Below, in pieces: positions 26,888 to 56,400 of a stretch of DNA of 64,000 nucleotides. The translations under genes were made by a program, and so were the position numbers. How positions within the stretch are numbered: position 1 is the stretch's first letter; each line of letters opens with the position of its first letter. The notes below the pieces were generated by a model. It did not search any database, had not been told where the DNA came from, and saw only the letters and a list, made by a program, of their open reading frames with translations. The DNA is taken from positions 1-64,000 of the forward strand of contig NIVC01002127.1 of NCBI GenBank assembly GCA_002269645.1, written 5' to 3'. Source of the stretch: Macrostomum lignano (taxonomy: Eukaryota).

Positions 26888-27725
26888 TCTCTCCCCGATC
26901 ACTTCCCTCTCACCCTCCATCTCCCTCTCACCCTCCATCTCCTTCCCACCCTCCATCTCCCTCTAACCCTCCATCTCCCTCCATCTCCCTTCCAACCTCC
27001 ATCTCCCTCCCACCTTCCATCTCCCTCCCACCCTCAATCTCCCTCCCACCCTCTATCTCCCTCACACCCTCCATCTCCCTCCCACCCTCTATCTCCCTCA
27101 CATCCTCCATCTCCCTCCCACCCTCCATCTCCCTCTCACCCTCCATCTCCCTCTCACCCTCAATCTCCCTCCCACCCTCCATCTACTTCCCACCCTCCAT
27201 CTCCCTCTAACCCTCCATCTCCCTCACACCCTCCATCTCCCTCCCACCCTCAATCTCCCTCCCACCCTCTATCTCCCTCACACCCTCCATCTCCCTCCCA
27301 CCCTCCATCTCCCTCTCACCCTCCATCTCCCTCTCACCCTCAATCTCCCTCCCACCCTCCATCTACTTCCCACCCTCCATCTCCCTCTAACCCTCCATCT
27401 CCCTCCATCTCCCTCCCAACCTCCATCTCCCTCCCACCTTCCATCTCCCACCCACCCTCTATCTCCCTCCCACCCTCTATCTCCCTCCTACCCTCCATCT
27501 CCCTCCCACCCTCCATCTCCGTCTCACCCTCCATCTCCTTTCCCACCCTCCATCTCCGTCTCACCCTCCATCTCCCTCCCACCCTCCATCTCCTTCTCAC
27601 CCTCCATCCCACACCCACCCTCTATCTCCCTCCCACCCTCCATCTCCCTTCCCACCCTCCATCTCCGTCTCACCCTCCATCTCCCTCTCACGCTCCATCT
27701 CCCTCTCATCCTCCATTTTCCTCTC
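26888..27725. repeat. Polypyrimidine minisatellite, 18-bp unit
   Basis: ccctccatctccctccca variants. Confidence 0.93.
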
Positions 27726-28349
27726 ACCCCTTAAATCCCCATCCTGGATTCTCACCGACCCCAACTCAGACTTCCCACAGTGTAACTAACTGATGTTCCC
27801 ACATCAGGCCAATGTCAGGCAGACAGTTCAACCAATGGGATCATGGGGAGCGGAGCTTTTTTAGATTAAGAAGCCTCCTCAGAAGCCTATAAGCCAGCAA
27901 GCTAAAGTGTGATTTCTACGCTCTGAAAAATAGAAACAGATATTTTTTGCAAATCTGCATAGCTTTTCAAACTAGCAAGAAAATATCCTCATTGCAGGTA
28001 AGCCTTACCAAACTAAACTGCTTAATTAATTAAAAATTAAAGTTGAACGAATAGCAGAAATTTTTATCAGGATAATACCAGTACTTAGTTATCTTTAAAA
28101 TTGAGCATTCAAAACAAGTCATCGACTGAGATGATAACGGCATTGTGGTTTCAGGGTCAATTGAAGGTGAAAATAGTAATGAAGCTTTTGAAATTGTCTG
28201 AATTCTTAGAGTTTTAAAAGGCGTGAGAGCCCTGCTTTTTGTAGTGGGTCTTTGCAGTTGGGTTCTTTTTCTGGAACTTCGATGGTTTTCTTTTAATTAA
28301 TTTAATCACCCCTTTCACCTTCATCTCTGTCTTCTTCTCTCCATCAGAT

Positions 28350-29285
28350 CCTCAGTTGCTGGGCCAGTCTCCCAGAGTGTCAGTTTCTGGGCCAGTCTCC
28401 CAGAGTGTCAGTTTCTGGGCCAGTCTCCCAGAGTGTCAGTTTCTGGGCCAGTCTCCCAGAGTGTCAGTTTCTGGGCAAGCCTCCCAGAGTGTCAGTTTCT
28501 GGGCCAGCCTCCCAGAGTGTCAGTTTCTGGGCAAGCCTCCCAGAGTGTCAGTTTCTGGGCCAGTCTCCCATGCAGAGTGTCAGTCTCCCAGATCCTCAGT
28601 TTCTGGGCCATGCAGTCTCCCAGATCCTCAGTTGCTGGGTCATGCAGTCTCCCAGATCCTCAGTTGCTGGGCCATGCAGTTTCTCAGATCCTCAGTTGCT
28701 GGGCCATGCAGTCTCCCAGATCCTCAGTTGCTGGGCCATGCAGTCTCCCAGATCATCAGTTGCTGGGCCATGCAGTCTCCCAGATCCTCAGTTGCTGGGC
28801 CATGCAGTTTCTCAGATCCTCAGTTGCTGGGCCATGCAGTCTCCCAGATCCTCAGTTGCTGGGCCATGCAGTTTCTCAGATCCTCAGTTGCTGGGTCATG
28901 CAGTCTCCCAGATCCTCAGTTGCTGGGCCATGCAGTCTCCCAGATCCTCAGTTGCTGGGCCATGCAGTTTCTCAGATCCTCAGTTGCTGGGCCATGCAGT
29001 CTCCCAGATCCTCAGTTGCTGGGCCATGCAGTCTCCCAGATCCTCAGTTGCTGGGCCATGCAGTCTCCCAGATCCTCAGTTGCTGGGCCAGCCTTCCACC
29101 AGATCCCCAGTTGCTGGGCCATGCAGTCTCCCAGATCCTCAGTTGCTGGGCCATGCAGTCTCCCAGATCCTCAGTTGCTAGGCCATGCAGTCTCCCAGAT
29201 CCTCAGTTGCTGGGCCATGCAGTTTCTCAGATCCCCAGTTGCTGGGCCATGCAGTCTCCCAGATCCTCAGTTGCTGGGCCAGTCT
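28350..29285. repeat. Composite minisatellite, 28- and 32-bp units
   Basis: gtgtcagtttctgggccagtctcccaga then gatcctcagttgctgggccatgcagtctccca; related to 56545-56978. Confidence 0.95.
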
Positions 29286-29318
29286 CCCGCATATTTAAGA
29301 GCATTCCGAAATTCGAGC

Positions 29319-29822
29319 GTCATACTCATACTCATACTCATACTCATACTCATACTCATACTCATACTCATACTCATACTCATACTTATACTCATACTCA
29401 TACTCATACTCATACTCATACTCATACTCATACTCATACTCATTCTCATACTCATACTCATACTCATACTCATACTCATACTCATACTCATACTCATACT
29501 CATACTAATACTCATACTCATACTCATACTCATACTCATACTCATACTCATACTCATTCTCATACTCATACTCATACTCATACTCATACTCATACTCATA
29601 CTCATACTCATACTCATTCTCATTCTCATACTCATACTCATACTCATACTCATACTCATACTCATACTAATACTCATACTCATACTCATACTTATTCTCA
29701 TACTCATACTCATACTCATACTCATACTCATACTAATACTCATACTCATACTCATACTCATTCTCATACTCATACTCATACTCATACTCATACTCATACT
29801 CATACTCATACTCATACTCATA
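29319..29822. repeat. (CATACT)n microsatellite, ~500 bp
   Basis: Direct reading. Confidence 0.98.
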
Positions 29823-30261
29823 CGCCACCGTCTTTAAAGGCTGTAATTATACGAGCATGTATGCGAAGTTATTAATAAAATATCGATTTTGGTGAAAAAA
29901 AATCGATAACACTAAGTGGGTGTTTCGCAGTATGTACAAGTACAGATCCTAAAAATTCTCCCAGCTCAATTGCCAGTGCACAAGGCGGGCGGGGGGATTA
30001 TACTATTACATAGCTGAGAAACTGTGAACAAAGCGATAAGCCCCGAGATCGGGGTGGTAAACCAAGCTTAGCATTTGTAATCTCGCTAGCAATCAGAAGA
30101 AGAAATAAAGAATGAGTCGTTCTGATCACAGAAAATTTTACACTTCCGTTTGGGACTCGGTTTGCGGATCAGTCCTCGGACTAGTATGCAAAATAACAGA
30201 AAGATCTTTTTGCTGGTGAGGCCCAACCGCGAAGCCAACTTCCGTTCGCAGAAATTCTCAA

Positions 30262-31640: not shown

Positions 31641-32699
31641 GAGGAAAGAATGGGGGTAAAGCATTTCAGTTTGATCGGCAAACACTGCGGCTGAAAAAAA
31701 TCCTTCTTGCTAGCGAATCTAGACAGAGAGAGACAGAGCGGCTATAGGAGCTGACCATTGTCCGTCCGTGTCGTTCTGAGTTCTGGGAGTCTACTCGCTC
31801 TCTCTTTCTCTTTCTCTCTCTCTTCAAGAGGAGAATAGTAGAGGACAGACACCCCACGCACGCAGCGAGAGTCTTCAGAGTTTCATAGCAGTGCTACACT
31901 TCGCGCCCACAGAAGAGTCCAGTTACTCAAATCGAAAGTTCCTCTGCAGCTTTCTAGCCCTCCGTCTCACTTTGTCCGCAAAAATATTTCTATTCCTCTG
32001 ACAGAAAGAGAGTGTGAAAGCCAATCTATACACCCATTCAGCTTTAGTCTGCTATTGCAGCTTTGAGAAGGCAGCTCAACAACTGTCAGTTGCCGTTATA
32101 AATTGAGTCTAACGGACAGCAGTAGATTTTTTTCTTAATCCTCTCCCCGCCTCACCTTCTCAACTCCAGTACGCTGTTCTCCGATTTTTCGCTAGATTTT
32201 TTCACTAGAAAAGTTGAGTTGTCTTCGATTACTGCTCACTGCCCCACCCAGCCGGCAACCCTCGCCTCAAGTTGTTGCCACAGGTTCAATAGCTGAGACT
32301 TGACAAATATTACTTGCTGACACATCTGTCGACAGACCAAAACTAAGCGCTTGGCTCTTCAATTTCTGTCTTTCCCTGTCTCGATGCGGTGGTAAGTGAG
32401 AATTCTGCATGCCATTTTTTGCCTTTTATGCGTCGAAATTTGAGCTTCTCAAATAAATAGTTTGCATCTTCAGTCTAAAGAATTTCTTCCAGTTTCTTCG
32501 TGACATCAGAAACATATTTTCTTAAAAGAGCTTATATGCCATTTTGACGACATCATTTACAGGTTATAATTTCTGGAATTTATTTTTTATCAATAATGAA
32601 TTGGAGTACGAATTATTTGCACCTGTAAAGCCACTAGACTTATTATTATCATGTGTATCCAATGCAACATCTACCATGACTCCAAATATTTATATACTT

Positions 32700-33392
32700 T
32701 TGCGTCCACATTCGCATCCACATCCGCATCCACATTCTCATCTGCATCTACATCCACATCCGCATCCACATTCTCATCTGCATCTACATTCACATCCGCA
32801 TCCACATTCTCATCTGCATCTACATCCACATCCGCATCCACATTCTCATCTGCATCTACATTCACATCCGCATCCACATTAGTATCTACACCTGCGACTA
32901 CATCCACATCCATATCCGCATCCACATTAATATCTACACCTGCGACCACATCCGCATCCACACCCGCGTCCACATCCACGTCCACATCCACATCCGCATT
33001 CACATCCGCATCCACATCCACATCCGCATCTACATCCACATCCGCATCTACATCCACATCCGCATCTGCATCTACATCCGCATCCACGTCCACATCCGCA
33101 TCCACATCCGCATCCACATCTGCATCCACATCCGCATTCGCATCCACATCCACATCCACATCCGCATCCACATCCACATCTACATGCACATCCACATCCG
33201 CATCCTCATCCACATCCGCATCCACATCCACATCCACATCCACATCCACATCGCATTCGCATCCGCATCCACATCCGCATCCACATCCACATCCACATCC
33301 ACATCGGATTCGCATCCGCATCCACATCCGCATCCACATCCACATCCACATCCACATCGCATTCGCATCCGCACCCACATCCGCATCCACAT
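32700..33392. repeat. Degenerate (CATCCR)n hexamer array just upstream of the SK start
   Basis: catccg/catcca/catcta units. Confidence 0.93.
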
Positions 33393-33450
33393 TCCACGCA
33401 ACCCCCAGGAGCCCACACATTAGCTGCAGCGGCTGCATTGTTGAGTTGGC

Positions 33451-36400
33451 ATGAGCGGCAAGGCGCAGGGCAGCAGTATAGTCGAGGACCCCGGCATACC
33501 TTTAGTCGGCAAAGGCGGCAGCATGAATGGCAGCAGCTACGGTTCGTCTGTCGGCGAGCAGCCTAAGACCTACAAATACGAGAATGTTGGCGCTCGTTTG
33601 GCCCGTCGGAAGGAGCTGTTCGTTAGGCGGAAGCTAATCGCCGATTTGAGCTTATTCTTTGCCATGCTTGGCATCGTGCTAATGATTGTTGAAACCGAGT
33701 TGTGCATGGCGAACGTGTTCAACAAAGGCCAGCCCGGATCTATCATCGTGAAGAGTCTAATTAGCATTACCACGGCCATTCTTCTTGGCTTTATCACCTG
33801 GTACCACTACTTGGACATCAAGGTATTCATGATTGATAACTCCATCGATGACTGGCGGCTAGCCATCACTATGTCGCGAGGTTTCCATCTCGCTCTTGAG
33901 CTGCTGGTGTGTGCCGTGCACCCGATACCAGGACAGCACGAAGTCCAGATGCTGGTGTACGATGACACCAAGAGAGTGCGACTGCTTCAGGTAAGTTATG
34001 TTGTTTAATAATATACAAGTCACTCCAGTGAGTGAAGTCAAGGAGTTATTTGCATGTTGAGTAGGAACTTTTAGGACTTTGATTCATAGTTTGCTTTCAT
34101 ATCCGCATCGGTATATGCATAATTCGAGCTACGGCTAGTATAAATACAAGCTCAAATCCGCTTTAGTAGGGACTTTACTGATTAACTGATAGTTACAGCC
34201 TTTTTACCGATTAATTAACAAAAAATCGTTTCCTGCTCTGCTCAGGTGATTCCTATCGACGTAATCTTCAGTCTGCCCATGTTTCTAAGATTCTATCTGG
34301 TCTGCCGAGTCATGATGCTGCACAGTCGCCTGTACCAGGACGCTTCATCGCAGAGTCTGGGCGCTTTGAATAGGATCCACTTTAACTTCCGGTTCATCTT
34401 CAAATCCTTGATGAATCTCTATCCAGAGTACGTTCTAACAGTAATGGCTCTGTTCCTGTTCATCTGGGCATCTTGGGCAGTTCGCGCCTGCGAGATGTAC
34501 CACGGCCAGGAGCACAGGAACTTTCTAAACAGCATGTGGATGACGGCCATCACATTTCTAACTGTTGGATACGGCGACATTGTACCGGCGTCTTACTGCG
34601 GTCGAGGCATTGCCGTGCTCACTGGTAAGTAAAAAATTAGGCCAAGGGATTCCGGCCTTTCGAGTTTAAATCTGTGGTAGAATCATCCAGTCCAAAGTCC
34701 GCGGCGTATGACCACGAAGCTGAACTATCGAATACTCCTAGTAGTTTCTAGGAAAAATTGGTGACTGTTTGAGTGGGGCAGAGTTGCCTAGCGGTAAATT
34801 CGCCTAACTTACGAACAACGAACCCCTGGTTTGAATTCTTACTAAGCCACATTCATTTGGGGCTTGTGCCAAAACCTCCAAGGCACAAAGTGTACATGCC
34901 TGAATATTAGAAAGTCAGGACCCCTGTGCACCCTGTGTGAGCGTGTGTATGAGTGCTCGACTGCGCGCTTGTACGAAATGTGCTCACGAGTCAGCGGAAT
35001 GGGTGGAATTCCCTCAGCGCTGGTTGCGGGACGATGTCGCCTAAGGCGTTTCGCCAGGTTGCAATTATTATTGCTACATTTATTAATTCCTGTTTGAGGC
35101 GCCCTTCTGCACGAATAACGCACTAATCGACAGCGTGAAGAGTTTTAGGAATTATCTAGGCACCGACATTAGCAAAAGACACTATGGTTGTTTTGTTTTC
35201 CAAAAATTATTAAGAGTCTCAAAAGTATCAACTTAACGCTCCGCCGCTCTAAGTGTCAAAAAAGCTTTTAATCAAAGCAAATCTAAGGCATGAATCGGAT
35301 AGCGCAATTTTGGCAGCCTACTTAGCTACTAAAGCATACCAAATTTGGTTGTCCAATACGCTCGATTCTATTTACAAAGTTCGATCGGCATGTATAGATA
35401 GCTTGATCGGATTAACATGAACCTGCAACAACATGAAAATGTTGCGTCGCGAATGTAGGACAGCTTGCTGGAATGAATAGTAAAATCTGCATGTAACACT
35501 GACAAGCATGCAGGAGTTGTTAGCTTACAAAGTGCTTGCTCAAATTGGATTAGGGGCGCAAATCTGGCATATGAAGAATAAAAAAGCTAACTTAGTAAGC
35601 TATGTATGAGTCAGACCTTCTTCCATACTGCCCACGCGTTGTAAAAAACAATTAAGCTTGAAACGCAATCGACGAATGATTCGGTATATTTGGTAATTCT
35701 TGATCGACAAAGTGACATGGGTATGAATGACAATTACTAACACTTTACCAACAGTTTATTATGATCACAATGTCCATAGTATCACTTAATGACACTTTTT
35801 GGTCTCCTCACAAAAGACTTTACCATTAAGCCTGTTCTATCAATTCGTTCACTAAGAGCCACATTACCGACCGCTGTAAGGTGACCCACCAACAAGGCGT
35901 AGGGTAAATAGATTTCTGACGATAGAAAGCCAATTGGTCTCAGTGTACCCTGAGAAAAGTGTCTCGTATGTACCCGCGGGCATCTGCGTGCTCAAGGATC
36001 AGGTAAATGAGTATGGCTGATTTCCTAGTCTCCAAAAACTACGAGCAACTAAGCTAAAGTACTTCTGTCTAAAACTGCACACAGGCCTCTTTGGCACCGG
36101 CGTCACGGCTCTGGTCGTTGCGGTGCTCGCCCGCAAACTCGAACTGTCTCGGGCAGAAAAATACGTGCACAACTTTGTCATCGATATTGAGCTGGACAAA
36201 CAGGTGAAACACGCGGCGGCAAACATCCTTAAAGAGGGCTGGCTGTCCTACAAGTACAAAAAGGCTGGCAACACAGGCAAAACGTTGAAACACCAACGAA
36301 GACTTTTACACTCGATTCACCGGATCCGAGACCTTCGAGGCGATCAGAAGCGTCTAGCTGACAGCTCGGTTAGCCTGACGGAGATGCATCGCAATCAGGC

Positions 36401-36512
36401 GTTTATGATGACCAGCTTGACCACCGTGCAGAGTCGCAGTCGAGAGATGGAGTCTCGTCTAGCCCGCATCGAGGACAAACTCGACAGACTGCTGCAACAG
36501 TCCAGGGCTTGA
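33451..36512 (+). CDS. SK: Small-conductance Ca2+-activated K+ channel (SK/KCNN family), 448 aa
   Basis: Exons 33451-33990, 34246-34624 and 36085-36512 join in frame. S4-S5 linker [11 protein letters not shown], pore [13 protein letters not shown], calmodulin-binding domain [27 protein letters not shown]-terminal coiled coil. Confidence 0.95.
34775..35095 (+). mobile_element. Probable tRNA-derived SINE (family B)
   Basis: Degenerate A/B boxes, then AGTGTACATGCCT..CACCCTGTGTGAGCGTGTG..GAGTCAGCGGAATG and an ATT-rich tail. Related segments at about 3460-3775 (+), 19075-19250 (-), 18830-18865 (-) and 385-410 (-). Confidence 0.55.
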
Positions 36513-39296
36513 TTGAGTTAACTGACTGGCTGAGTTTCTATTGATGGAATTCTATGCAAGGTTCGTGCTGTCCCCAAAATTTTGTTAGTTTGGCCAGATC
36601 CTGGGTCGATAGTAATATCTCTGGATTTTCCTATAACAGAATATATTAAGGCTTTAATGCCCCTAAGAGGAGTTTTCATATATAGATAGCCATACCTAGC
36701 AAATAGTAATTTTGAGAAATAGATTAATCTCGACTCGGCATTTGTAGTGGTTGCTTGACGCTTGGACGGAATTAATTTAATTTGAGGATGACGATCAATG
36801 CCCAATATTGATTAATAACCCAGTCTGAAAGCCTTGGGAAAATGCAGACTTGTTCAGCTTCGGTTCAGATGAAGTGCTTGCTACTCACTAAAGTATAGCT
36901 ATCTTTATTGAGACGGTTCACATTGTCGCTAGTAACTCCCTCTGCGGGTCAAGATTGCTCAAATCAATGTTCAATCGGTTCAGACCAAGTTAAAGTTTTA
37001 TTATAACAATCTTGAGCACGCAGTGTCACTAGCGGTAGCTAATGTAATTTTTAGTTAGCGGTTGCTGTTCTCGATGTGATTGTGGAATATGGTTTACATT
37101 TATCCGCTGTTTTGCTGTCTTAGTGATAAAACTTTGTTTTTTTGCGCACTCAACGTGTTTCAATGGTCAACAATAAACAGTCAATGGTCTTTGGGTACCC
37201 GTTTTAATTTTTGTTTGTCTCTGAGTACAAGAATTGTGCAAACTTCATACTGTTAATTTTCTGTGTTGTCTAACTTTTCTGAGATTTTTCTGTTCAATTC
37301 TGTGAAACTTTCTAAATGAATTTGCTTGACAATTTTTTTCTTAAACATGTCTACTATGCGGCAATCTTTCTGTTGCTTTCGCAGTCTGTTTTTTGGTATT
37401 TTGCTAATGTCTTTTCAAAATGTTTGCTAGCAATAGCCCGCGAAAAGGTCAGCAATTGTTCCTTGCACAGACGGGCAGACGTTGCACCACCCAAAACCGT
37501 GATTCAAGGCATAAAATTGAGTGTATAGATTCGTCTTAATATTTGTTTTGGCTTGTGTTCTGTTCAGTCGTGTTTTTGTCCAATATTATTATGTTGTTTT
37601 TGGATTAAAATTTGTTATAGAAGTTGTTGATGTCTTTTTTTCAAGCGTTGCCTTGTCGTTTCCGACGCTTATCGGCATGATTGGAAAAAAAGTACTTTTA
37701 CATCACAACGACGTTTGGCCGACGTAAAACGTTGTCATTCGTCGGAGTAATGTAAAAAGATCATGGCAAAGGAAATTTCCGGCTTCCTTGAATAAATGCC
37801 GATCAGATTAGTTTTTGCTGCTTCGAAGTCTGAGTTTTTTTGCAAATTTTGGTGCGTGATTTTGTCCCAATAAAATATTACAGTTATACTGCACTGTTAT
37901 AATTCTTATTATATTTGCGACCTTAATATTAATACTATATTTTACGTTTTTTTTCAGGCGGAAGTGTTTAGTAGCTAAAATATGTCAAAGCCGCTGCAAC
38001 TTAATTTATTGTTATTAGACAGGCTTACTCACCAAGCATTATTCGTTTATTTCTTATGGCACTACTCGCCAGACTTCTGCGCGCACCTACTACGACATGT
38101 TCGGGGTGATGATATTGTTTTTGTACGTGGTTATTGTGCGCTTAAACGCGTCATCTAGTGTTCATCTTTCCCTGCAGGCTATAAATGTGTATCGTCTCTT
38201 TCGAGATTAAAAAATTGCAATACCAGCAATATCTATATATTACCTCGCATATTTGGTTTCATGTCGATAAAGAGCGTAAATATAATGAACGTTAATTATT
38301 TTTTTCTGTCGGCTTGTGTCCGTTTACAAACAAAAAATGGCCTCTTGAAGTATAAATGTATGCTCACGTGTGTGTATCCTGTGCAGCATTCCGACGTCTG
38401 TCGCCGACAAATACAGTAGATGTCTTTTTACAGTACATCGTTTTATGATGATACATCTTCTAGAGACGTTGAAACGTCGGATTGATTTTAGACACAAGGC
38501 CATATGTCTCCAGAACTGCGACCCAGAAACTTCAAAACATCCAGTCCGGCCCGCTCAATGTCCTCTTCTCAGCTTCCTTCTCTCTTTCCACTCTTTTCTT
38601 CACTCTTCTCAATTCTCTCCTCCCCCCTATTCTCGCTTCTCTTCCTCTCCCATCTTTTCTCTCCTCTTTCTTCTCACTTTATTCCCTCTTATTTTTCTCT
38701 CATATCCATGGCCCGTAACCATGAGCTAGTAGGTTCTGGCCCATGAGGTAAATTTTTTTCCAAAATCTGCTCTAACGATGGTCATCCCAAAAGTTTCAGC
38801 TAACACTTATTTATTTTCAACAAACGAGTTGTCAGAACAACGAACTGCTCAAAGTCACTCAAAATAACTTTTATTGGTTTGAATCGTGCGTTCCCAGCTG
38901 CCAGGCAACTTCTAGATGCCGTCAGCAGCGCCGGATTTGCAATGCGGCGGATCACGCTGAACAGGCAGGTCTAGGCAGTAAAACCGACGCCCTCAAAGCT
39001 GGTTTTTGAGCTTTGGGAAGACGTCGAAATCACACTGAGAATATGAAGTCTTTGGAGAGTAAGGAGGATGACAGGATGAGCAGAACCTCCCTCTGGTAGT
39101 CCCGCAGTAGGTCCTGCACAGTGAGTGCGGTGTGCGAGCTAGCATTGCCGTGCAGAAGGAGTGGACCAATTGCCAGGGTCTGTGGCCACTTCTTGCGCAG
39201 GACAGGCCAAAGATGATGAATTATGAAGCTCCGATAGTTCTGTTGGTTGATGTTTTTGCCCTCAGGAACGCGGTGGATGAGAATAATTCCAAACTG

Positions 39297-39331
<35 letters not shown>

Positions 39332-40546
39332 TTCGCCGCAGAACCGATGGTCTCGATGACTGGGCAAAGCTTTTCGACTGCCACTCGGAGTTCTGGCTCT
39401 TGAGGTTGGGCTCGTACGAACAGATCTATGTCTCCTCCAGCGAGACGTATAATAATAATATCAATTAGTATTATGATTAAACTTTTGTGTAAAAATACTT
39501 TTAGAATTGAGACAAACCCACTACATCCATAGTTGCAGCCTACAGATTAAGGAATACAAAATCCCGGGTTTTGCCAATCCCGGGATTCTCACGATCGGGA
39601 TATCCCGGACTATGCCAATCCTGGGATCCCGACGAATTGAGCCTGGATCCAGGGATCGAAAAGGTTCCTTAAATTTTGTTGGTGCAATTTTGGTTCACGA
39701 AGCCAGCTAACCTGATTTTAAAGGGCTTTTAATGATAAAGATAGAACACACTAAAATATTTTGCTAACAAGAAACTGACAGTGAGCTCGGAATTGGAGTG
39801 TGATGTACTGGCTGGTGTAATATACGTGCTTTGTTACATGCCAGTATCAGCTCAGGAAAATCACACTTGATTGTGATCTAACCTGGGGGATGATAGCATA
39901 CAGAGCTATGGCCCCAGGTACTGATACCGTACCAGGGTAGAAGCAAGGACTACTAGAAGTGTTCCTAGTGGTCCTTGGGCAGAATGGGATCAGACCTCAC
40001 CCTCCCCAGGCACCCCCCCTAGATAGAGAATTGGTACATGTAGCTCTGGTTGTGGTCCGATAGCAAGGTCCCACTGTTCTAATCCCAACTACGGCCAAGG
40101 ATCGAGTTTTGAAGGAGGGACTGCTTAAATTAGTTATACATTATTACACCTTAAATACCCTTGCGACCTGCTAACAGCTTCTGTTTTGTGTCCCTGCAGC
40201 CCTATAGCCTTCTACTTACTAGTCTGCATGCTCAAAAGATTAAGAAATCAAAGTAGGATAACTGGGTTGTGATTTACTCGTATTTCTGCAGTATTTCAGC
40301 TGCAAATACTAGTACTCGAGAATGGATCTTTGAATTATTGCAAAGCGAGATCGGGTAGTGGTCCCTGGGTCAATCCCGGGATTTTCGAATCCCGGACAAT
40401 AGTTATCCCGGGATTCAGGCCTAATCAAAATTGGAATCTGTTCAAAACATGGAGGAAAGAATAGAATGGAGTGCTAATCTTAACTTTTAACATCCCTTTC
40501 CCCCTCGTTCCTTCCTATTGGCTCAAGGCATGTGAGTTTTGCTCAC

Positions 40547-40910
40547 CTGATGATGATGCTGGTTGGAGCTGAGCCGTCAAGTGCTGCTGAGTGTGAAGCT
40601 GTTGCTGAAGATCCTGACGATGGCCTTCCAGGACTTGCAGTTCGGGCAGCTCCACCTCCTGTCGCAGCGCCGCCAGCCGGTCGCTCCCCGCCCCGGAGGC
40701 GCCTCGCCCGGGCTGCCGATGCCGTCCTCGGCGTCCGGAGAAGAAGTCATCTCGGAGTTGTTTAAGTCTTCGTCAGCTTGCTCTAAACCGAGTGCAGTAG
40801 ACAAGCGCTCGGCGAGCTGTTGTTTGCGGCCCGTAGTAGGCAGGCCTCTGTTTCGCAGCTCAGCCTTGAGTTGGTGCACGTTTAGTCGCTTTGGGCTGGC
40901 ACTCATGGCG
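40547..40910 (-). pseudogene. SAP-domain exon fragment (cargo)
   Basis: MSASPKRLNVHQLKAELRNRGLPTTGRKQQLAERLSTAL fits the SAP motif. An acidic linker follows; a shifted frame then gives a coiled-coil-like stretch ending at a G|gtgagc donor (40546) next to the left TIR. Confidence 0.65.
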
Positions 40911-41117
40911 GTGGCTGAGCAAAAAATTGAGAAATGGCGACGGAGACAAGCCGGGCCGGGTGCAGAGGCTTTAGCTGGCTGGCGCGGCCAACACCCCCAG
41001 ACCTCAACCCCCGCCAAAGTACAGCGATATGTACAGCGGCACCCCCCGGCGTGTCTAACACACCTTACTCAGAGAGTAACGATTGCATTACCTAAAGCTA
41101 AACAGCATCTGAGTGAA

Positions 41118-41255
41118 TGTCACTGGGTTAATGTCACTGAGCCAATGTCACTGGGCCAATGTCACTGGGCCAATGTCACTGGGCCAATGTCACTGGGCCA
41201 ATGTCACTGGGCCAATGTCACTGGGCCAATGTCACTGGGCCAATGTCACTGGGCC
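41118..41255. repeat. Minisatellite, 14-bp unit, inside the cargo element
   Basis: gggccaatgtcact. Confidence 0.9.
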
Positions 41256-41581
41256 AGTGCCCATAATGCATAAGCAACTGATGGATCAGACCTTGCTGGC
41301 AAAAGTGATCTTCCAGTCCTCCAGACCTTCCAGGCCTCGCACAGAGCCAAGAGCACAGGTGCGTCAGATAACGCAGTAGGCAGAATGCCCTCTAATTGCC
41401 CTCTCCAGCAGGCAGATGCGGTCTCTGGGCTGCGAACTGTCACCTGCCCTATGCCAATGTAAACTGTGCGCCCCCACCCATGCTGCAGCTGCCGCTTGCG
41501 TACATAAAAGCTAGACCTGTGCGAAAACAATTCAGTTTTCGTTTTTTAAAGAAATAAGATTTCAAGACCTGCGGTGTTGCA

Positions 41582-43280
41582 ATGAGCCTTGGAGACTCCA
41601 GCGACAGCTCGATTTCGGACGCGCCTCCCGCTACCCCAAATTCTCTCTGCATCATCTGCGACCAAGCTGCAGTCGGTGTGGCTCCGTTCTCCCGCTGCCA
41701 CATGTGCAGTCAACACCTCAGTGTCGATGTGGCCAATCTATTCAAGCTCAAGGAGGAGGTCGAAGAGCTGCTGCGTGCCTACTCACAGGAGTCACAAGAC
41801 TCACATGACTCAAAAGAGTCACAAGAGTCACAAGAGTCACAAGAGTCACAAGAGTCACAAGGCGCAGCAGGTGCAGCTGGCCGTGCAGCGCTGCTGCAAC
41901 CAAGACAAGACGCTGAGTCGCTGCGTCGTCTCGCTCTCGACATCCAACAGCAGCTGCAAGAGGTCAATCACAAATTCGATTTGGTACAGCAACACATCGA
42001 CTCGTTTCGTAGCAAGGTGACGGGCCAGCTCTCAGGTGTGCTTGAGGCAGTGCGTGTGTGCGAGCGGGACCTCGAGGGCGTCTCCCAGCTACAAGCAGGA
42101 GGTGGCCACGGCGGAGGCTGCAGGCGACATGGCGGAGCTGCTTCGCCTGGTCGAGTCCATGCACGAATCGCTTGGAGACTTGGAGGCCGACTTTGAGAGG
42201 TCAGAGCGCCTGCTCAGCGACCAGAGCGACAATGAGGAGCTGTAGCTGCGGCTTCTGGGCCAGCTCGAGCGGGTGGTCGGCATTTGTGCGGGACGTAGTG
42301 AAGACGGTGACTGGTCGAGAGACGCTGCGGTGAACGCGACATCCGAGGAAATAGACGCTGCTGAGAGAGAGAGAGAATGTTGGAACCGATGGTCTTCAGT
42401 CACGAGGTGAAGCTGGATGGCGATGTTCGGTGTCTGGCTGTGTGCAGCGACACCAGCGGATTCGTTGGTGACCGCTCAGGCCGTGTGGTTCGTGCCGACT
42501 CAGCGAGAGACGGCAGCGAGGCTCTGCCTCAACCCTGCATCTTGACAATCATACTTTTCCGACAGAGACCACCTACTGGTGCTGTCGGTGGACGGCTCAC
42601 AGAAGTTGCGATGCCACTGCAACATCGACTTGAAGAATATCATCCGTGGACTTCACTGCGACCGTCAGCTGCTTTTCATTGCTCAGCGTGACGCAGTGAC
42701 AGTGACGGACCTAAGCGGTTGCGAGGTACGTCGAGTCCGCCCACACATCGTGGGCTTCGGTGACATCTGTGGAATCGGCGGCAACGCAGCCTCCGTGTTT
42801 GTGTCCAGTGGAAACAAAATTGCTGCATTCAGCAAAACGACTTGGCAGATGGAGACGGTCATCACGCTGTCTCAGCTTCCTGATGCTCGACTGGGTAACC
42901 TGGTGACTCACGACAACTGCATCCTGGTGAGAGACTGGAAGCACAAGCAGGTGCACAGAGTGCGCATCGACACCCAGCAGCTGGTGGCCTCTTTCCCGAC
43001 TCAGCGTTCCGGCCTACGACAGTTTGGTGGTCCAGCCGATGTGGCCGTCGACAGCAGAGGCCGCCTGTTCGTGAGTGAATTCGCTGGTCACTCAGTGCGA
43101 GCGGTGGCTGCAGACGACGGGTCGCTGCTGTGGACTCTGGGGACTCCGGGCGTGAGCGGCAGTGGAGACGGCAGATTCAACAGACCATGGGGTCTGGCGG
43201 TGGTGACGGGAGGTCCGCGCGAGCAGCTGGTGTTGGCTGACTTTATGAATAGCAGACTGCAGGTGTTCAGTTCATCCTAA
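41582..43280 (+). pseudogene. Intronless Zn-motif / coiled-coil / NHL-repeat (TRIM-NHL-like) reading frame, disrupted (cargo)
   Basis: N-terminal CxxC..CxxC, (SQE)n run, coiled coil, and C-terminal NHL repeats (FGGPADVAVDSRGRLFVSE; FNRPWGLAV..ADFMNSRLQVF). At least three frame changes (about 42080, 42370, 42560) and an in-frame TAG at 42243-42245. Confidence 0.75.
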
Positions 43281-43520
43281 TTTTATTCACATGCCGAATA
43301 TTAATCGGACTGTGGGGTTTCTGCAGTTGATTGATTTATTGGAGGCCGGGTTTTCATTAGATTTTTTTCCATTGTATTATGCAATTTCTTACATTTTATG
43401 ACCCTCTTTGTCTGATAATTGTTCATCAAGTCCAATATAATCAGAATTTATATTTATTGAATAGAAGCACATTAAATATTATGCATGTATTAAGTAATTA
43501 AATTAAAGTCGCGTTGATCC

Positions 43521-43831
43521 CATGGAGGAAAGAATAGAGTGAAGTGCTAATCTGAGCCAGTTATTTTTGTCTCGCTCGATCTTAACTTTTAACATCCCTT
43601 TCCCCCCGTTCTTTCCTATTGGCTCGTGACTGCCATAGACAAAGTATTTTTCGTCTCGTTTTCTTTTCTGTTCCCCTCTGAAAGGTATGTCCCAGCATAG
43701 TACGAGCTCGCATCAAAATATGCTCTCAGCCAATAGGAAGGAACGGGGGGAAAGGGATGTTAAAAGTTAAGATCGAGCGAGATAAAAATAACTGGCTCAG
43801 ATTAGCACTCCATTCTATTCTTTCCTCCATG
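43521..43831. mobile_element. 311-bp MITE-like palindrome formed by an internal left-TIR copy and the right TIR of the large element
   Basis: About 105-bp inverted repeats (43521-43625 vs about 43725-43831). Its own flanks (gttgatcc / gttaaaaa) do not form a TSD. Confidence 0.7.
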
Positions 43832-44329
43832 GTTAAAAACTGGAATTCATTTTAATAGTTTAAGATCTACATATTCTATACTGCATTAGGAAAAGTACAT
43901 GCCAGCAAGTATTTTTGATTATTATTTGTTTTTCATTTCCTACAAATGTTAATCCTTCATGAAAATTGCTTTCCTAGATTTACATGTACAAGTACGCTAG
44001 CTGTAGTATAAGCTCTATTCTTAATCTGCTGCAATATACATGTACGATCGTAGCTAAGCCGATTCGCATGTATTCATAAAACAAGTAGGTATAGTGTTGT
44101 CGGTAATCCATGCAGGGAACGAGAAGTTTGTCGCCGAATAAAGCTATACTGTCGCCAGAAACTCATGTACGATCGATACTTGTGTAACAGCTTCTGTTTT
44201 AGATAATGTAAATGCGTTAAAAATACATGTACAAAATTAAGACACCCACAGACTCCCACTATCAGTGGCGTACGAAGGAATTTTTTTTGAATCAAAGGTA
44301 CCACAAACCTATCGGGCACCAATATCTGG

Positions 44330-45022
44330 CGTCTTGGTGGCGCCCCTGTTTATTGGTGGGCACCCCTGTCTTTTGGTGGGCGTCCCTGTCTCTTGGTGGG
44401 CGCCCCTGTTCCTTGGTGGCACCCCTGTTCCTTGGTGGGCGCCCCTGTCTCTTGGTCGGCGCCCCTGTCTCTTGGTGGGCGCCCCTGTTCCTTGGTGGCG
44501 CCCCTGTTCCTTGGTGGGCGCCCCTGTCTCTTGGTGGGCGCCCCTGTCTCTTGGTGGGCGCCCCTGTTCCTTGGTGGCGCCCCTGTTCCTTGGTGGGCGC
44601 CCCTGTCTCTTGAATTGGCGCTCCTGTCTCTTGGTGGACGCCACTGTCTCTTGGTGACGCCCCTGTTTATTGGTGGGCGCCCCTGTCTTTTGGTGGGCGT
44701 CCCTGTCTCTTGGGTTGGCGCTCCTGTCTCTTGGTGGACGCCACTGTTTCTTGGTGGGCGCCCCTGTCTCTTGGTGGGCGCCCCTGTCTCTTGGTGGGCG
44801 CCCCTGTTCCTTGGTGGCGCCCCTGTTCCTTGGTGGGCGCCCCTGTCTCTTGGTCGGCGCCCCTGTCTCTTGGTGGGCGCCCCTGTCTCTTGGTGGGCGC
44901 CCCTGTCTCTTGGTGGGCGCCCCTGTTCCTTGGTGGCGCCCCTGTTCCTTGGTGGGCGCCCCTGTCTCTTGGTCGGCGCCCCTGTCTCTTGGTGGGCGCC
45001 CCTGCCTCTTGGTGGCGCCCCT
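44330..45022. repeat. Minisatellite, 19-20-bp unit
   Basis: ggtgggcgcccctgtctctt variants. Confidence 0.95.
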
Positions 45023-48000
45023 GTCGGGGGGGGGGGGAATCGATCACAATGGTGAAGATTTTCAAAGCTCAGGGACAAGCTAGCTGATCAATTGGGGTGA
45101 CGATGGCGAGGTTTGCTCGAGGACGGGCCGAAGCAACTTATTATATTTATAGGCCACATGAGAGTCACATGGTGACGTCACCATCGAGCCGTACGTTAAT
45201 TGGCTGGAAAAAGGGTGTCTAGGAATGTGGCTTAGGATGAGTCACTGCGGGATCAGTGCAGGGGTAATGGGTGATTGCATGGACAGGTGAGAGTAATAAA
45301 TCACTACAAATGACAATCTGACATATACATGTAGGTCACGCTTGTTGATACAATTTGTAGTTTCAAACATAAGAGCAAAAAGAGGGTGACATTTAAGTGT
45401 GAATCGCACAACAACCCGGAGGTCAAATTTTCATGCACAGAGTCAGACGTACGCGTTTCCACTGGACATGGATTGCCGTCTATAGAAACAAAATGGCTTG
45501 CAGAAATTTCTGGGCAAATAAAATAACGCAATCCAGGCCACCCTTTGAGAATATGATGATAATAAAGTCATGAAGTATAATTTATGGAAAATAAAAGTCT
45601 CGAGTGAGCAGATATTCGAGAGCATCAACCATTAAGCATTCTCTCATTGACAGCCTCTCTACTGAACAAGAAATATAAATCAATGCAGGAATTCAACCTC
45701 TGAAAGCTTTCTAACTCCTGCAGCAAATCTTAACTTCTCACCTTCTAGACTTCCAAAAAGTCATATTCGAGTGTGTAATATGAATCGAGTCTGAGCTAGA
45801 GTCTGAGTCTGAGTCTCGACTCTCAACCATATCCTATAAATTAGTAAAAGTACAACTTGAAATTTTTTAACGTTTATCCAGGATTTTCCCATGGGGTCCG
45901 CATCTTTGGAATCGCCATTTCATTTGAGGGGCCGGCATTTCATTTGAGGGGCGCCACTTCATTTGAGGGGGGGGGGCATTTAATTTGGGGGGGGGCACGG
46001 GTACCTCAATCTTAATTCTTCTCTAAGGTGGTAATCAAAGGTCTCATAGATAAAAGTTTTATTGGCATCTGCGGTAATTTCGCTGTATTTAATATCGAAA
46101 AATTGTTTAAAGTTTTGCGAATCCGCCGCTGTAATAATATTCGACCTATCTTCCTATTTATTTCGGATTTACATGCTATTTTGTATGTAAAATAGAAATT
46201 CACAATGTACTACTTCCAATAGGCAAATAGTCCGGCAAAATCGTCTTTAAGATTATGTAACTTTTTTATCTTATCAGTCAAATATATTTCTACTAAAAGT
46301 AATAATGATTAATATTTTGCACAATAGGATGTTTATCCTTGACACGGCATCAAAATCAATCGGTTTAAGAAGTCAAAATATAAAAAAATCGGAATTCTTG
46401 AAGCTATTTATGTCTTCTGATTAGGCCCTTAATTCTTAAAAGCTGCACACAGGGTAAATTGCAATTGCAGAATAGTCGATTCGATCGATTCTGAAACAAG
46501 AGGCAAGACAAATTATAAAAAGTGCATATCAAAACAAAACAATCAAGTTTCTTAGTCAAAAGTACATCCTATTGAATATTTTAAGGAATTAGTGCTTGTG
46601 ATAGGAAACGTTATCATCTGTCACTAAAATAGTAAAAATACATCAGGTTAATAATACAGCACTTTAGAGTTTGAAATTAACTCTTGGAAATAAATAAATT
46701 ATAATAAAAAAGAAATAGTAACATGTTGATAGCCTCACTTGTAATTCTAGAACTATTTTAGCCACTGCATGTAAATGCATGTAAATCAGTACAAACATGT
46801 ACATGCATATCTTTAGTTGAAGAAACCACAAAACACTAAAACGTTACACCGAAAAATTTAACAAGGGCTAATTATTTTTGTTAAATGTTATTCACTACGT
46901 GTGTTATAATTTACAAAAATATTGTACCACTTAGCCTAATACATTTATTAAAAACTTTAAAGTCCATGGGGGCCTTTTTTAATTTAAATGTAAATTTCAG
47001 GAAACTCAGATAAAACTGAGAAATGCAGATCTTCCTCACCAGTTGTAAAGCACAATGATCAAATACATCAAATTCGCTGCAGATACCATGTAGCCAAATG
47101 GACACATTGAAAGTAAGTACATCGCAAGGCGGTTAATCTGTTTATTTAGCGTTCAAAAATAAAAGGTAAAGACACACTATAATGGACGCATAGGTAAGAA
47201 AAACAAAAATGACTAGCTTTGGAAACATCAGTTGAATTCCTAAAATCATTTTACGAATATTAAATAATAGAAAAACTTGCGAGTGAATAAGGGAACGGAT
47301 TTCAGATGTACCTTGGGTCTCCTAGACGAGTTGGTTGAAAATTCCCGTATAAATCAAATATGTTCTCAAATAGATACTGTAAAAGAAAATTTGCTATGAA
47401 GGAATGTTTTGTTATTCCTAGTGAAAATAAAAACAGTTAAAAACATTTGTTCAAACCTAAGCTTGCAGTTAGCCCCAGTATTTTTCATATCTTTAAAACT
47501 TTGTTGAAAACAAACTTTTTAACTTCGGCATTTTTACGAGTTGCCCAATAAATCCCAATTTTAGTTTTCAAGGCCTTGATCACTGTACGTGTACAATAGT
47601 TCTTTTTAATCAATGTATTATATAGCGCTAGCAATCTATCCCGTATTACGCGTTTATTTATGTAAAAATTTTCTTTTTCTAATCGCGCCTTATTTTTGTT
47701 TAAGCACTCTATTTTTGGTTATTTCTTTCTTACATATTTGCTTCAAAAATACCCTTCATATTTAATGCCTAATAATTGCCAGCAATCCTTTTATCTGATT
47801 TTTTTGTCTGATTAATACATATAAACTTATTTTTATCACCTACGAATTCAAGTGACACCATACTTGTCTTTTAATTCCTTACTTAAATACTTTTTGCTTT
47901 GTTTGCCGTTAAAGATTTTTGAAGTTTCGTAGAAAAAAAAAATTGGCGCCCTTTCAAATACTATATTATTGTAAAACTCGCCGCACAGATCCCATTCTAT

Positions 48001-49888: not shown

Positions 49889-51181
49889 TGAGGGCTAAGC
49901 AATAAGTTTCCAGATGTGCCCAGACAGAAATAGTTTAAGAGAAAAAACAGTTACATTTTTTCAAAGTACTTTCCAGCAGATTCGATGTAAATTTTTATGT
50001 ACTTTACCACTTGCTGAAATAGCTGGACCAATCTAAAGCAGGCACCTCTTCCACATGCCGAATGAAAGCCTCCATTGCAGCTTCTAATGATCCATAGTGG
50101 ATTTCACGCATCCTGCGCTTGATTTGTGGAAACAGGGGGCCAGGTCAGGGCTGTAGGGTGGATGACCGAGCTCTTGAATGAGCTCTCCGGCCAGGAACTC
50201 TGCCACCTGTCAAGCCTTGTGGGCCGGGGCATTGTTGTGATAGAGAAGGATGCCCCAAGCTCGAGTCCTTTGGCGATGCCTAGAGAGAGTGCTCAGCACT
50301 TCTGGCAGGCAAACATTGGCGTACTAGTCACCAGTGACTGTGTGCTGCTGCACAAGTGGAACTGTGGCCAGATGACCAGTTTTTGCCACAAAAATGGCCA
50401 CCATCTGCTTTGCCACACTGCACTCTCACCGAAGCTTGGATGGTGGGGTGCTGCCAACTGGAGTCCACTGGGCCAACTGCTGCTTAGTCTCTGGGGCGAA
50501 ACTATGGATCCAGGACTCGTCACCACTGACAATATCCCAGACCAAGTTTGAGCTGCCTCCATTGAATCTGTTGAGCATAGTGCGGCACCAGGTCACTCGA
50601 GCCTCTTTCTGCTCCGGAGTCAGCTGATGAGGCACCTAGCATGCAGAAATCTTGCTCAGGTTGAGATGTGAATGCAGGATTGTCCTGATGGATCCTGATG
50701 AAATACCCACCTCTGCCTCTATCTGGGCCAGTCACTCGGGCATCATCCTCAACCATGGCCTGGACAGCAGCAACATTATCCTCAGTTGTTGTGGAGACAG
50801 ACAAGCTGCTGCGCTCCTTATCATCCAGACTCTGCCTGCCACATCAAAATTCAGCAAACCAGTCAAAAACGGTGGATCTAGATGGTGCTTCATCCCCAAA
50901 AGCTCCTCGCAATCGCTCAAGACTTTCTTGCTGCCGCAAACCACTTTTAAAATGGTAGTAAATCATTGCTCTAAAATGACTCCTATTGAGCTCCATTGTG
51001 AATTTGATAGATAGGGTGGCTATGCTAGCTTGGTTTGGGATGCTACACTGGCTATATATGACCAGTGTGTTTGAAACTTTACAAATATTGTACTTATATA
51101 ATGTACTTGACACCTATGGTGTCAGATTTTGTCAGCTGCCTCTCAACTATGCACACCCAGAAACTTATTGCTCAGCCCTCA
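49889..51181 (-). mobile_element. Tc1/mariner element, 1293 bp, defective transposase
   Basis: TIR TGAGGGCT(A/G)AGCAATAAGTTTC with TA on both flanks. Transposase starts at 50996 (MELNRSHFRAMIYYHFK) and shows WVPHQLT, SGDESWI, HNNAPAH and HPPYSPDLAPC, with several stops and frameshifts. Confidence 0.95.
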
Positions 51182-53420: not shown

Positions 53421-56400
53421 GTTAACCCAAAGTCTCAGTTGGCATATCTAGAACATTATATAAGGCGATTATCTGCTATGCTGACCAGTAGTGTCAGCTC
53501 CACAATTGGTGGCAGTGTAAAACCGCCTGTGTCAGCTGCAGCGGTGAGTTCATCTAGCAAATCTCCGGGTCACCAGCATCTTCGCCGGCTTGGTTGTCAG
53601 TGCTCAAATCCTCCATCAGTGAATGGTTCCGGTTTGATCTGCTGTCCAGGCTGTTCAGACTGGTTTCATCGGGACTGCGTTAGTCACCTGCTTGCTAATG
53701 TTAGTAATAATAAAGTTGGAGGCGATAAAGATAGTTCGACTGTGAATTCATTTCGATGCGAGTCGTGTCTCAGACTGCGACGGAATCCGAGTCCCGGTTA
53801 GTGTAGATTTCTAAATGTATTCTCATTTTTAGTCAATGGATAATTTAAAAAGCATGTCTACATCTACTTTAAAAAACCATTGGGAATTTCATTGGATTCA
53901 TCAGATAATGTCACCCACCAAAGGAAGACTAAGAGAGGACTCTATTACCCACTAGAAAAGTAAGTGTGAGGGTTCTATTACCCACCGTAGGGGGACTAAG
54001 AGAGGGTTCTATCACCCACCATAGAAGGACTAAGAGAGGGTTCTATCACCCACCATAGAAGGACTAAGAGAGGGCTCTATCACCCACCATAGAAGGACTA
54101 AGAGAGGGCTCTATCACCCACCATAGAAGGACTAAGAGAGAGGGTTCTATCACCCACCATAGAAGTACTAAGAGAGGGCTCTATCACCCACCATAGGATG
54201 ACAAAGAGAGGTCTTTCACCCACCATAGTAGGACTAAGAGAGAGGGTTCTATCACCCACCTTAGGACGACTAAGAGAGGTCTTTCACCCACCATATGGGC
54301 ACTAAGGTAGAGGGTTCAATCATCCACCAAAGTAACTGATACATGTATAATGTATCAAGTTGATGAATTCGCAGGCACTCCCGAGCACGGCTACGCTTAT
54401 GATGATCAACATCAACAGTCTCAGAATCTGCAACTCCATCTGCAGCAAGCAGTGCCTCATCATAATCAGCAGCAGCAATCTCAATTGCTGTCGCCACAAA
54501 AATTGTCATCGCCAACAAAACAGTCTCACGGCGCGGCGTCTTTCTATGAAACCTCAAGCGCAACCTACGGAGGCGGCGCCGGCCGTGGCGGCAGGAATTC
54601 CAGCGGCTCGAAGAAGATCAGCTTCTTGCCTAGATCTGATTCTTCTAGTAGCGGCCAGCAGCAACTAAGCAAACCGTCTACTAGTAAGGCGGCTGTTAGC
54701 GATGGTTAGTGATCGAATGGATTTATATGTTCTTGTCCATGGTATGTCTTGGTGTGTCCTTGGTATCTGTCTTAGTGTGTCCTTGGTATGTCTTAGTGTG
54801 TCCTTGGTATGTCTTAGTGTGTCCTTGGTATCTGTCTTTGTGTGTCCTTGGTATGTCTTAGTGTGTCCTTGGTATCTGTCTTATTGTGTCCTTCGTGTCT
54901 GTCTTATTGTGTCCTTGGTATGTCTTAGTGTGTCCTTGGTATCTGTCTTATTGTGTCCTTGGTATGTCTTAGTGTGTCCTTGGTATCTGTCTTATTGTGT
55001 CCTTGGTATCTGTCTTATTGTGTCCTTGGTATGTCTTATTGTGTCCTTGGTATGTCTTAGTGTGTCCTTGGTATCTGTCTTATTGTGTCCTTGGCATGTC
55101 TTATTGTGTCCTTGGTATGTCTTAGTGTGTCCTTGGTATGTCTTAGTGTGTCCTTGGTATCTGTCTTTGTGTGTCCTTGGTATCTGTCTTATTGTGTCCT
55201 TGGTATCTGTCTTATTGTGTCCTTGGTATCTGTCTTATTGTGTCCTTGGTATCTGTCTTATTGTGTCCTTGGTATCTGTCTTATTGTGTCCTTGGTATCT
55301 GTCTTATTGTGTCCTTGGCATGTCTTATTGTGTCCTTGGTATGTCTTAGTGTGTCCTTGGTATCTGTCTTTGTGTGTCCTTGGTATGTCTTAGTGTGTCC
55401 TTGGTATGTCTTAGTGTGTCCTTGGTATCTGTCTTTGTGTGTCCTTGGTATGTCTTAGTGTGTCCTTGGTATCTGTCTTAGTGTGTCCTTGGCATGTCTT
55501 AGTGTGTCCTTGGTATGTCTTAGTGTGTCCTTGGTATCTGTCTTTGTGTGTCCTTGGTATGTCTTAGTGTGTCCTTGGTATCTGTCTTTGTGTGTCCTTG
55601 GTATGTCTTAGTGTATCCTTGGTATCTGTCTTTGTGTGTCCTTGGTATGTCTTAGTGTATCCTTGGTATCTGTCTTATTGTGTCCTTGGTATCTGTCTTA
55701 GTGTATCCTTGGTATCTGTCTTATTGTGTCCTTGGTATGTCTAAGTGTGTCCTTGGTATCTGTCTTATTGTGTCCTTGGTATGTCTTAGTGTGTCCTTGG
55801 TATGTCTTAGTGTGTCCTTGGTATCTGTCTTTGTGTGTCCTTGGTATGTCTTAGTGTGTCTTGGTATCTGTCTTATTGTGTCCTTCGTGTCTGTCTTTGT
55901 GTGTCCTTGGTATGTCTTAGTGTGTCCTTGGTATCTGTCTTATTGTGTCCTTGGTATCTGTCTTAGTGTGTCCTTGGTATCTGTCTTTGTGTGTCCTTGG
56001 TATCTGTCTTATTGTGTCCTTGGTATCTGTCTTAGTGTGTCCTTGGTATCTGTCTTATTGTGTCCTTGGCATGTCTTATTGTGTCCTTGGTATCTGTCTT
56101 ATTGTGTCCTTGGTATCCGTCTTATTGTGTCCTTGGTATCTTTCCTAGTGTCTTTTATTTGTTTATCGATTATGCTTCTGTTGATGCCTACTTGACACTT
56201 CTAGTTTGTTGGTTTTCTTCTAAATTTCCCCGCCTGCATATTTCACTTATTCACCTATTCAAAAACTTATTGCAACCAAATAACCTGTCTGACTAAACTC
56301 AGGTGGTAAAGGCGCCGGTTCCTCTGGCCGTCGTGCACAGGACGCCCCCGCGGGCTCCGCTAAGTCCAATACTGATGCGGCCTCGCCTCCGCAGATTGAC

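Follow-up and report, generated by a model that had tools for sequence, protein, structure and literature searches.

Drosophila P elements leave 8-bp target-site duplications (TSDs) and carry terminal inverted repeats (TIRs) that begin with CATG, hAT elements follow the consensus nTnnnnAn in their TSDs and YARNG at the start of their TIRs, and the TSDs of MULEs are 9-10 bp long. Ends that belong to different copies can also be used together, as in the Ac/fAc macrotransposons of maize, which excise and reinsert with 8-bp TSDs (Huang & Dooner 2008, as cited in PMC9910405; Zhang et al. 2014, PMC4270019). In animals, Tan et al. 2021 reported 370 Pack-TIRs in 100 genomes, the single-copy ones having arisen mostly through gap filling (PMC8277862). 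Here we analyse positions 40448-43831 of a 64,000-nucleotide stretch of DNA from the flatworm Macrostomum lignano (contig NIVC01002127.1, positions 1 to 64,000 of the forward strand; henceforth the window), which a preliminary description had presented as a non-autonomous, P-like Pack element with SAP and TRIM-NHL-like sequences as its cargo. In our judgement, which gives this reading about an even chance of being correct, the interval is best explained as a one-off, TIR-bounded composite (i.e., a macrotransposon or a Pack-TIR formed by gap repair), and neither as a simple Pack element nor as part of an amplifying family.

The perfect 33-bp terminal inverted match at the two ends was confirmed, as 40448-40480 and 43799-43831 agree in reverse complement at 33/33 positions, with 0 expected in shuffles. 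The earlier notion of a two-TIR element holds for these inverted ends and fails for its simple anatomy, the interval being made up of a solo arm and a complete foldback miniature inverted-repeat transposable element (MITE), with a third arm inside. From left to right, the parts of the interval and its flanks are as follows (ORF: open reading frame).

40440..40447, no strand: putative 8-bp TSD, left copy GTTCAAAA
40448..40531, plus strand: solo (fractured) MITE arm, tip CATGGAGGAAAG
40546..40927, minus strand: SAP-domain ORF fragment, pseudogene
41116..41256, no strand: 14-bp minisatellite AATGTCACTGGGCC, 10 copies (Tandem Repeats Finder score 261, 96% matches)
41408..43507, plus strand: intronless Cys-motif/coiled-coil/NHL gene unit, pseudogene
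43520..43624, plus strand: inner (left) arm of the complete foldback MITE
43625..43727, no strand: non-palindromic MITE loop, 103 nt
43728..43832, minus strand: outer (right) arm of the complete MITE
43832..43839, no strand: putative 8-bp TSD, right copy GTTAAAAA

Specifically, the presumed right TIR (43799-43831) belongs to a 313-bp palindromic element, of whose outer arm it forms the last 33 nt. A repeat finder delimited this element at 43520-43832; its two 105-nt arms are 96% complementary, they enclose the 103-nt loop, and the whole element folds as single-stranded DNA at -124 kcal/mol (z=-24). The presumed left TIR is part of a solo, internally deleted arm, in which similarity to the MITE extends from 40448 to ~40531 (~77-84 nt) and stops at the arm/loop boundary. 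Aligned with the reverse complement of the right arm (43728-43831), the solo arm shows 33/33 and then 47/48 identical positions (~80/81 for the arm portion that both share). Two gaps break the alignment, a 1-nt insertion and a 29-bp deletion that lies between ATCT microhomologies near 40477-40480. Comparison of the solo arm with the inner arm (43521-43624) adds three further mismatches, and at the 3/3 informative sites that set the inner arm apart the solo arm sides with the right one, which is a weak signal (p ~0.04). That inner arm is the third arm within the proposed element, lies in direct orientation relative to the left arm, and ends in a clean junction of transposase type to foreign DNA (GTTGATCC) 13 bp past the end of the NHL 3' homology. 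We also considered whether the sequence continuing inwards from the solo arm is MITE loop, which would orient that arm, but dropped the idea for want of significance, as scores just as high were reached by 178 and 235 of 500 shuffles.

As expected of a MITE, the 313-bp unit is short (<800 bp), non-coding and furnished with TIRs. The other MITE traits, a TSD of its own and a high copy number, were not seen: its flanks agree at 4/8 positions, and there are three arms in the 64 kb of the window, with no further arm copy there, and 0 in the M. lignano DNA used for comparison, which consisted of two 20-kb stretches of contig NIVC01000303.1 (L001 and L002, 41 kb in total). A blastn-short search of the arms against these 41 kb gave only a 22/24 match to a 44-bp satellite, namely the ~44-bp tandem repeat GATTAGCAATCCATTCTAATCTTCTATCTGCGAGGTTGGCTATA at L002:16320-16600, aligned with the MITE tip GATTAGCACTCCATTCTATTCTT (E=0.006). 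This satellite may derive from a related TIR, or the match may be due to chance.

The flanks of the whole interval match at 7/8 positions, as the preliminary description had stated: GTTCAAAA (40440-40447) and GTTAAAAA (43832-43839) share GTT(C/A)AAAA, a degree of agreement reached by 0.06% of random 8-mer pairs from the window and by 0.3% of AT-rich pairs. The complete MITE taken by itself lacks an 8-bp TSD (GTTGATCC vs GTTAAAAA, 4/8). All three arm flanks start with GTT, and the only perfect alternative repeats are the palindromic tips themselves, CATG (for both pairings) or CCATGG (for the complete MITE), which are indistinguishable from the TIR. We tentatively take the outer flank match for a true TSD. 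Under the composite model the empty site before insertion would then read AATCT-GTTCAAAA-CTGGAATTC or, shown more widely, ...AATTGGAATCT GTTCAAAA CTGGAATTCATT..., and a complete MITE whose right end had last served as partner of the solo arm would not be expected to have a TSD of its own. Two observations that the preliminary description had named as speaking against a single element were not made, i.e., the cargo is not syntenic single-copy host sequence and the MITE pieces do not have separate TSDs of their own.

Inside the interval, a six-frame Pfam scan of 40448-43831 detected SAP and NHL domains only and no transposase, and the two divergent gene-like sequences noted previously are indeed present, SAP on the minus strand and NHL on the plus strand. 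The SAP ORF has its ATG at 40906 and codes for the domain at ~40796-40891 (Pfam SAP PF02037, 39.1 bits vs a cutoff of 23.9, E=5.4e-10), with the helix-extension-helix characteristic of SAP. A word-based homology search with this ORF returned no match, and its closest relative, residues 1124-1195 of the M. lignano protein A0A1I8HJ75 (86% identity), was recovered only by an exhaustive HMMER search. When A0A1I8HJ75 was aligned to the window with tblastn, the match fell into three collinear pieces in three frames (40927-40691, 40709-40611 and 40581-40546), so that the frame shifts near 40700 and between 40611 and 40581; the homology reaches as far as the inner edge of the solo arm, a point beyond which the M. 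lignano ORF runs on. The SAP sequence is thus a frameshifted, 3'-truncated 5' fragment, i.e., a pseudogene. The fragment borders on the solo arm from within, where arm and loop of the hairpin would meet, and this junction is therefore one of breakage or repair and not of insertion. On the minus strand of 36513-40447 we found no Pfam domain and no A0A1I8HJ75 homology that could continue the gene to the left of the arm, and on these grounds rejected the view that the fragment is an exon of a gene extending leftwards across it; the GTGAGC 'donor' beside the solo arm is probably meaningless, because the M. lignano homology crosses it in another frame. The 2481-residue A0A1I8HJ75 is itself a chimeric gene model that comprises two G-protein-coupled receptor (GPCR) copies, a retroelement-like zinc-knuckle sequence, the SAP ORF (placed between GPCR genes) and cadherin repeats, and it should not be used as a real protein architecture.

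Between the divergent SAP and NHL starts lies a 675-bp spacer with ten CCAAT motifs, as each join between units of the AATGTCACTGGGCC minisatellite creates one. To the right of it, an NHL frame survives as the ORF remnant 41582-43283 (Pfam NHL, E=2.7e-9). Its closest relatives are M. lignano proteins of an intronless family, with 82-84% amino-acid identity, and ~6 copies of the gene occur on L001 and L002, their DNA being 86-92% identical to 41408/41580-43270/43507 of the window. As the M. lignano copies are 85-90% identical to one another, the divergence of the window copy falls within the range of these paralogues. Intact ORFs exist in the family (600 codons at L002:1385-3187, and a divergent paralogue of 569 codons), and many of its members are also pseudogenes. 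The window copy is another: it has 91.3% nucleotide identity to the intact L002:1385-3187, from which it is set apart by three frameshifting insertions (+1 at 42084, +5 at 42372 and +1 at 42547) and by an in-frame TAG at 42243-42245, where relatives have Q, that closes the ORF 42036-42245.

Whether this cargo deserves the label 'TRIM-NHL-like' depends on the part considered. The NHL repeats of the family are closest to those of TRIM71, Thin and TRIM2/3 (E=1.8e-13 to 3e-10) and, as in TRIM-NHL proteins (TRIM71/LIN-41, TRIM2/3, Thin/Abba), they stand C-terminally after a coiled-coil region. By contrast with the full TRIM-NHL architecture (RING, B-box, coiled coil and NHL propeller), no RING or B-box was detected by Pfam in the intact relatives, even at E<=1; the family has a short Cys motif (C-x2-C...C-H-x-C-x2-H) and is intronless, and the window copy is dead. 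The label is therefore apt for the NHL repeats and not for the rest.

None of the ~6 NHL copies of L001 and L002 was found to have TIRs like the arms at 40448 and 43831 or a SAP neighbour, nor did we find any other convincing TIR flanking them. In 3/5 of these copies, similarity to 41300-41600 of the window is gone directly upstream of the ATG, and in all copies compared it ends shortly past the stop codon or the 3' untranslated region. The duplication unit of the family is essentially the transcript, for which retroposition of trans-spliced mRNAs could be the source. A separate observation concerns one of the copies, which is split by a 2.6-kb non-autonomous hAT-like insertion (L001:7346-9930) with the TIR TAGGGGGCGACC / GGTCGCCCCCTA, a TAGGGGG start, GGGCCCGGG-rich subterminal repeats and the perfect 8-bp TSD GTGCGAGC. 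This insertion shows recent hAT activity in the NHL gene cluster and is unrelated to the CATGG MITE.

Taken together, these observations make it plausible that 40448 and 43831 work as a pair and bound one unit that lacks a transposase, has an 8-bp TSD and carries cargo of non-transposon origin. Its working ends would be two arms of one family in inverted orientation, the fractured one at 40448-40531 and the outer one of the complete MITE 43520-43832, and between them would lie ~3.0 kb of non-transposon DNA (the SAP fragment, the CCAAT-rich minisatellite and the frameshifted NHL copy). A single event that paired the solo arm with the outer arm explains together the match of the outer flanks, the complete MITE without a TSD and the junction of the SAP fragment with the solo arm. 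The unit is further supported by the cargo, since both ORFs occur in other contexts in M. lignano, SAP among GPCR genes and NHL without SAP or these arms. Also in its favour are the lack of downstream SAP exons outside the unit and its place in a 17-kb stretch rich in transposons and minisatellites. The unit has no evident present function, and its cargo is decaying.

Two routes could have led to such a unit. In the first, macrotransposition, two MITE copies near each other, one of them already broken at the hairpin loop, would have been cut at their outer ends by a transposase acting in trans and moved, along with the DNA between them, into this intergenic site. In the second, ectopic gap repair, a resident MITE would have broken at its hairpin loop, and repair synthesis would have used a different locus as template for the SAP-NHL DNA, going on until it met a further MITE copy, at which it re-annealed. 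The evidence bearing on the route is slight in both directions: the agreement of the solo and outer arms at three sites weakly favours repair, and the lack of a parental copy within the window weakly disfavours it. We would accordingly name either route only as a possible one.

Of the systems described above, the maize Ac/fAc (hAT) composites are matched in several respects. As in maize, a fractured end and a complete element of one family, i.e., the ends of two separate elements, stand correctly oriented around host DNA with the outer ends used together, and a putative 8-bp TSD (7/8) is associated with the outer ends and none with the inner end, GTTGATCC being unrelated to the right flank (4/8). 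Unlike in maize, the elements are 313-bp foldback MITEs, the host is a flatworm, and mobilisation is deduced from a single 7/8 TSD. With animal Pack-TIRs (PMC8277862) the interval shares TIRs at both ends (33/33 at the tips), the lack of a transposase, non-transposon cargo that is fragmentary and non-functional, and its single-copy state within the window, a state that in that study indicates gap filling independent of transposition; it differs from them in its ~3-kb cargo, its two transcription units, the extra complete arm and loop at one end, the absence of a cis parental copy within the window, and a TIR that is neither of hAT nor of Tc/mariner type. Plant Pack-MULEs and multi- or tandem-TIR MULEs (PMC5861414, PMC3310237) likewise have ~100-bp TIRs, gene fragments from multiple loci and occasional third TIRs, but here the putative TSD is 8 bp, the host is an animal and there is no evidence of amplification.

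Several points weigh against the composite. Only three arms of the repeat are at hand for judging the TSD, copy number and superfamily of the family, and scans of JGI metagenome contigs and prokaryote genomes for exact arm-tip and inner-arm patterns gave 0 matches. No parental copy of the cargo was found in the 40 kb on its left or the 20 kb on its right, contrary to the cis bias that has been reported for gap filling. Every arm tip bears a palindromic CATG (or CCATGG) that may itself have arisen as a target duplication, and the 7/8 match would then be a coincidence. Finally, composites are a priori far rarer than simple insertions side by side.

This last point leads to the strongest alternative, a serious one that we rate somewhat below the composite: two MITEs of the same family were inserted independently, ~3 kb apart, into resident intergenic DNA that already held both pseudogenes. 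A later deletion, starting at the fragile hairpin, would have stripped the left copy of its loop and second arm and removed neighbouring DNA along with them, the 3' part of SAP among it, and the 7/8 flanks would reflect chance or target preference, the true TSD being hidden in the CATG/CCATGG tip or lost. Independent insertion is the most frequent origin of neighbouring ends of one family, and local hopping also occurs among DNA transposons. Palindromes break at the arm/loop boundary, which is precisely where the solo arm stops; CATG (for both pairings) or CCATGG (for the complete MITE) could be read as a perfect 'TSD', and the GTT shared by all three arm flanks hints at a target preference; a dead resident NHL copy is unremarkable as well, given the many pseudogenes among the M. 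lignano members. Such a history, however, requires a coincidence of 0.06-0.3% for the outer flanks, and it needs CATG-type target specificity or a second event to account for a MITE that lacks a TSD while its arms are 96% identical. Also against it are the missing rest of the SAP ORF, of which nothing was found left of the solo arm, and the different neighbours that both cargo ORFs have in M. lignano.

The interpretation offered in the preliminary description, an active, multi-copy, non-autonomous P-like Pack element that spreads captured SAP and NHL modules and expands those families, appears very unlikely to us. The formal hallmarks of a Pack-type element are there: the interval has paired TIRs and an almost perfect 8-bp repeat in its flanks, it lacks a transposase, and its cargo comes from two unrelated loci. 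The TIR also starts with CATG like the Drosophila P end. The assignment to P nevertheless found no support: beyond the possible 8-bp TSD only the first 4 bases are held in common, the arms measure 105 nt vs 31 bp, the target is AT-rich, and the window contains no autonomous partner. We found no THAP/P or hAT transposase in the window, whose sole transposase remnant is of mariner type. The ends do not qualify as hAT: GTTCAAAA agrees with nTnnnnAn, but the third base of CATGG is T and not the R that YARNG calls for. Moreover, a simple Pack element would not have three arms.

The idea that the interval spreads SAP and NHL modules fared no better. Both ORFs are dead, and with non-functional cargo working SAP or NHL modules are not spread; no second copy of the 40448-43831 unit was found in the 64-kb window. 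The ~6 NHL copies and the one SAP copy of M. lignano are linked neither to each other nor to the TIRs, and as the NHL copies lack these TIRs and SAP, the NHL family multiplies without the 40448-43831 element, which leaves its proposed part in the expansion of the SAP and NHL families unsupported. The more far-reaching picture, in which a CATGG-ended foldback MITE family, possibly P-like, is still active in Macrostomum and mobilises kb-sized blocks of host DNA, the 3.4-kb unit being one of several copies that shuffle NHL/SAP modules in a recently duplicated genome, we regard as improbable to a high degree. If it were true, it would offer a tractable animal system for Pack-type gene duplication, M. 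lignano being transgenic-ready.

An assembly artefact, i.e., a mis-join or a collapsed repeat at MITE copies, is scarcely credible, for although the window is extremely repeat- and minisatellite-rich and palindromic MITEs are classic points of mis-assembly, a mis-join at a repeat would not yield a clean solo arm, a private 29-bp deletion and matching outer flanks, and the sequence is continuous with no Ns.

Should the composite reading be true, the interval would show cleanly, in a flatworm, how the ends of DNA transposons relocate or assemble gene sequence on a kilobase scale, and a foldback MITE family would be added to what little has been described of the DNA transposons of Macrostomum. 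Such relocation has already been documented for maize Ac/Ds and in ~55 animal genomes, mostly as single-copy relics. For annotation, the lesson is that both the SAP and the NHL ORFs of this locus should be labelled pseudogenes.

The interval lies within a 17-kb stretch rich in transposons and minisatellites, between two genes. In the protein collection, the best match of the neighbouring SK-channel protein has 61% identity and did not lead to an orthologous or homeologous locus. An Rfam scan of the window gave only two matches, both to tRNA and distant from 40448-43831. These surrounding features are listed below.

6467-6536, minus strand: tRNA-like match, borderline (30.5 bits)
33451-36512, plus strand: SK potassium-channel gene, on one side of the 17-kb stretch
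50126-51113, minus strand: mariner/Mos1-type transposase remnants (HTH_48, E=3.1e-10; DxxSGDESW-like piece), one remnant at ~50.8-51.1 kb
from ~53439, plus strand: PHD/SPOC gene, on the other side of the 17-kb stretch
62474-62545, minus strand: tRNA gene, solid (58 bits)

The mariner remnant at 50126-51113 is unrelated to the CATGG ends, and so is a fragment resembling a mariner C-terminus at ~38.9-39.2 kb, to the left of 40448. Adjoining the solo arm, at 39543-40440, a palindromic motif, (A)ATCCCGGG(ATT), forms clusters at 39551-39635 and 40372-40422 in inverted orientation; a separate decayed TIR element in this place (CAGATT...AATCTG) was considered and dropped, as it has no TSD. On the other side, 500 bp downstream of the MITE, a GC-rich minisatellite with a 20-bp unit (TCTTGGTGGGCGCCCCTGTC, ~35 copies) occupies 44332-45025. 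Further minisatellite arrays are found at 14730-15335, 16178-16696, 25563-26409, 26861-27793, 28356-29875, 32651-33454 and 54702-56195, and across the window such arrays generate long spurious ORFs. Lastly, two near-duplicate ORFs on the minus strand (8263-9060 and 19273-20058) each combine an SLC6 exon (SNF, E=2.3e-15) with a tandem repeat of 11 protein letters, which indicates a segmental duplication of ~11 kb.

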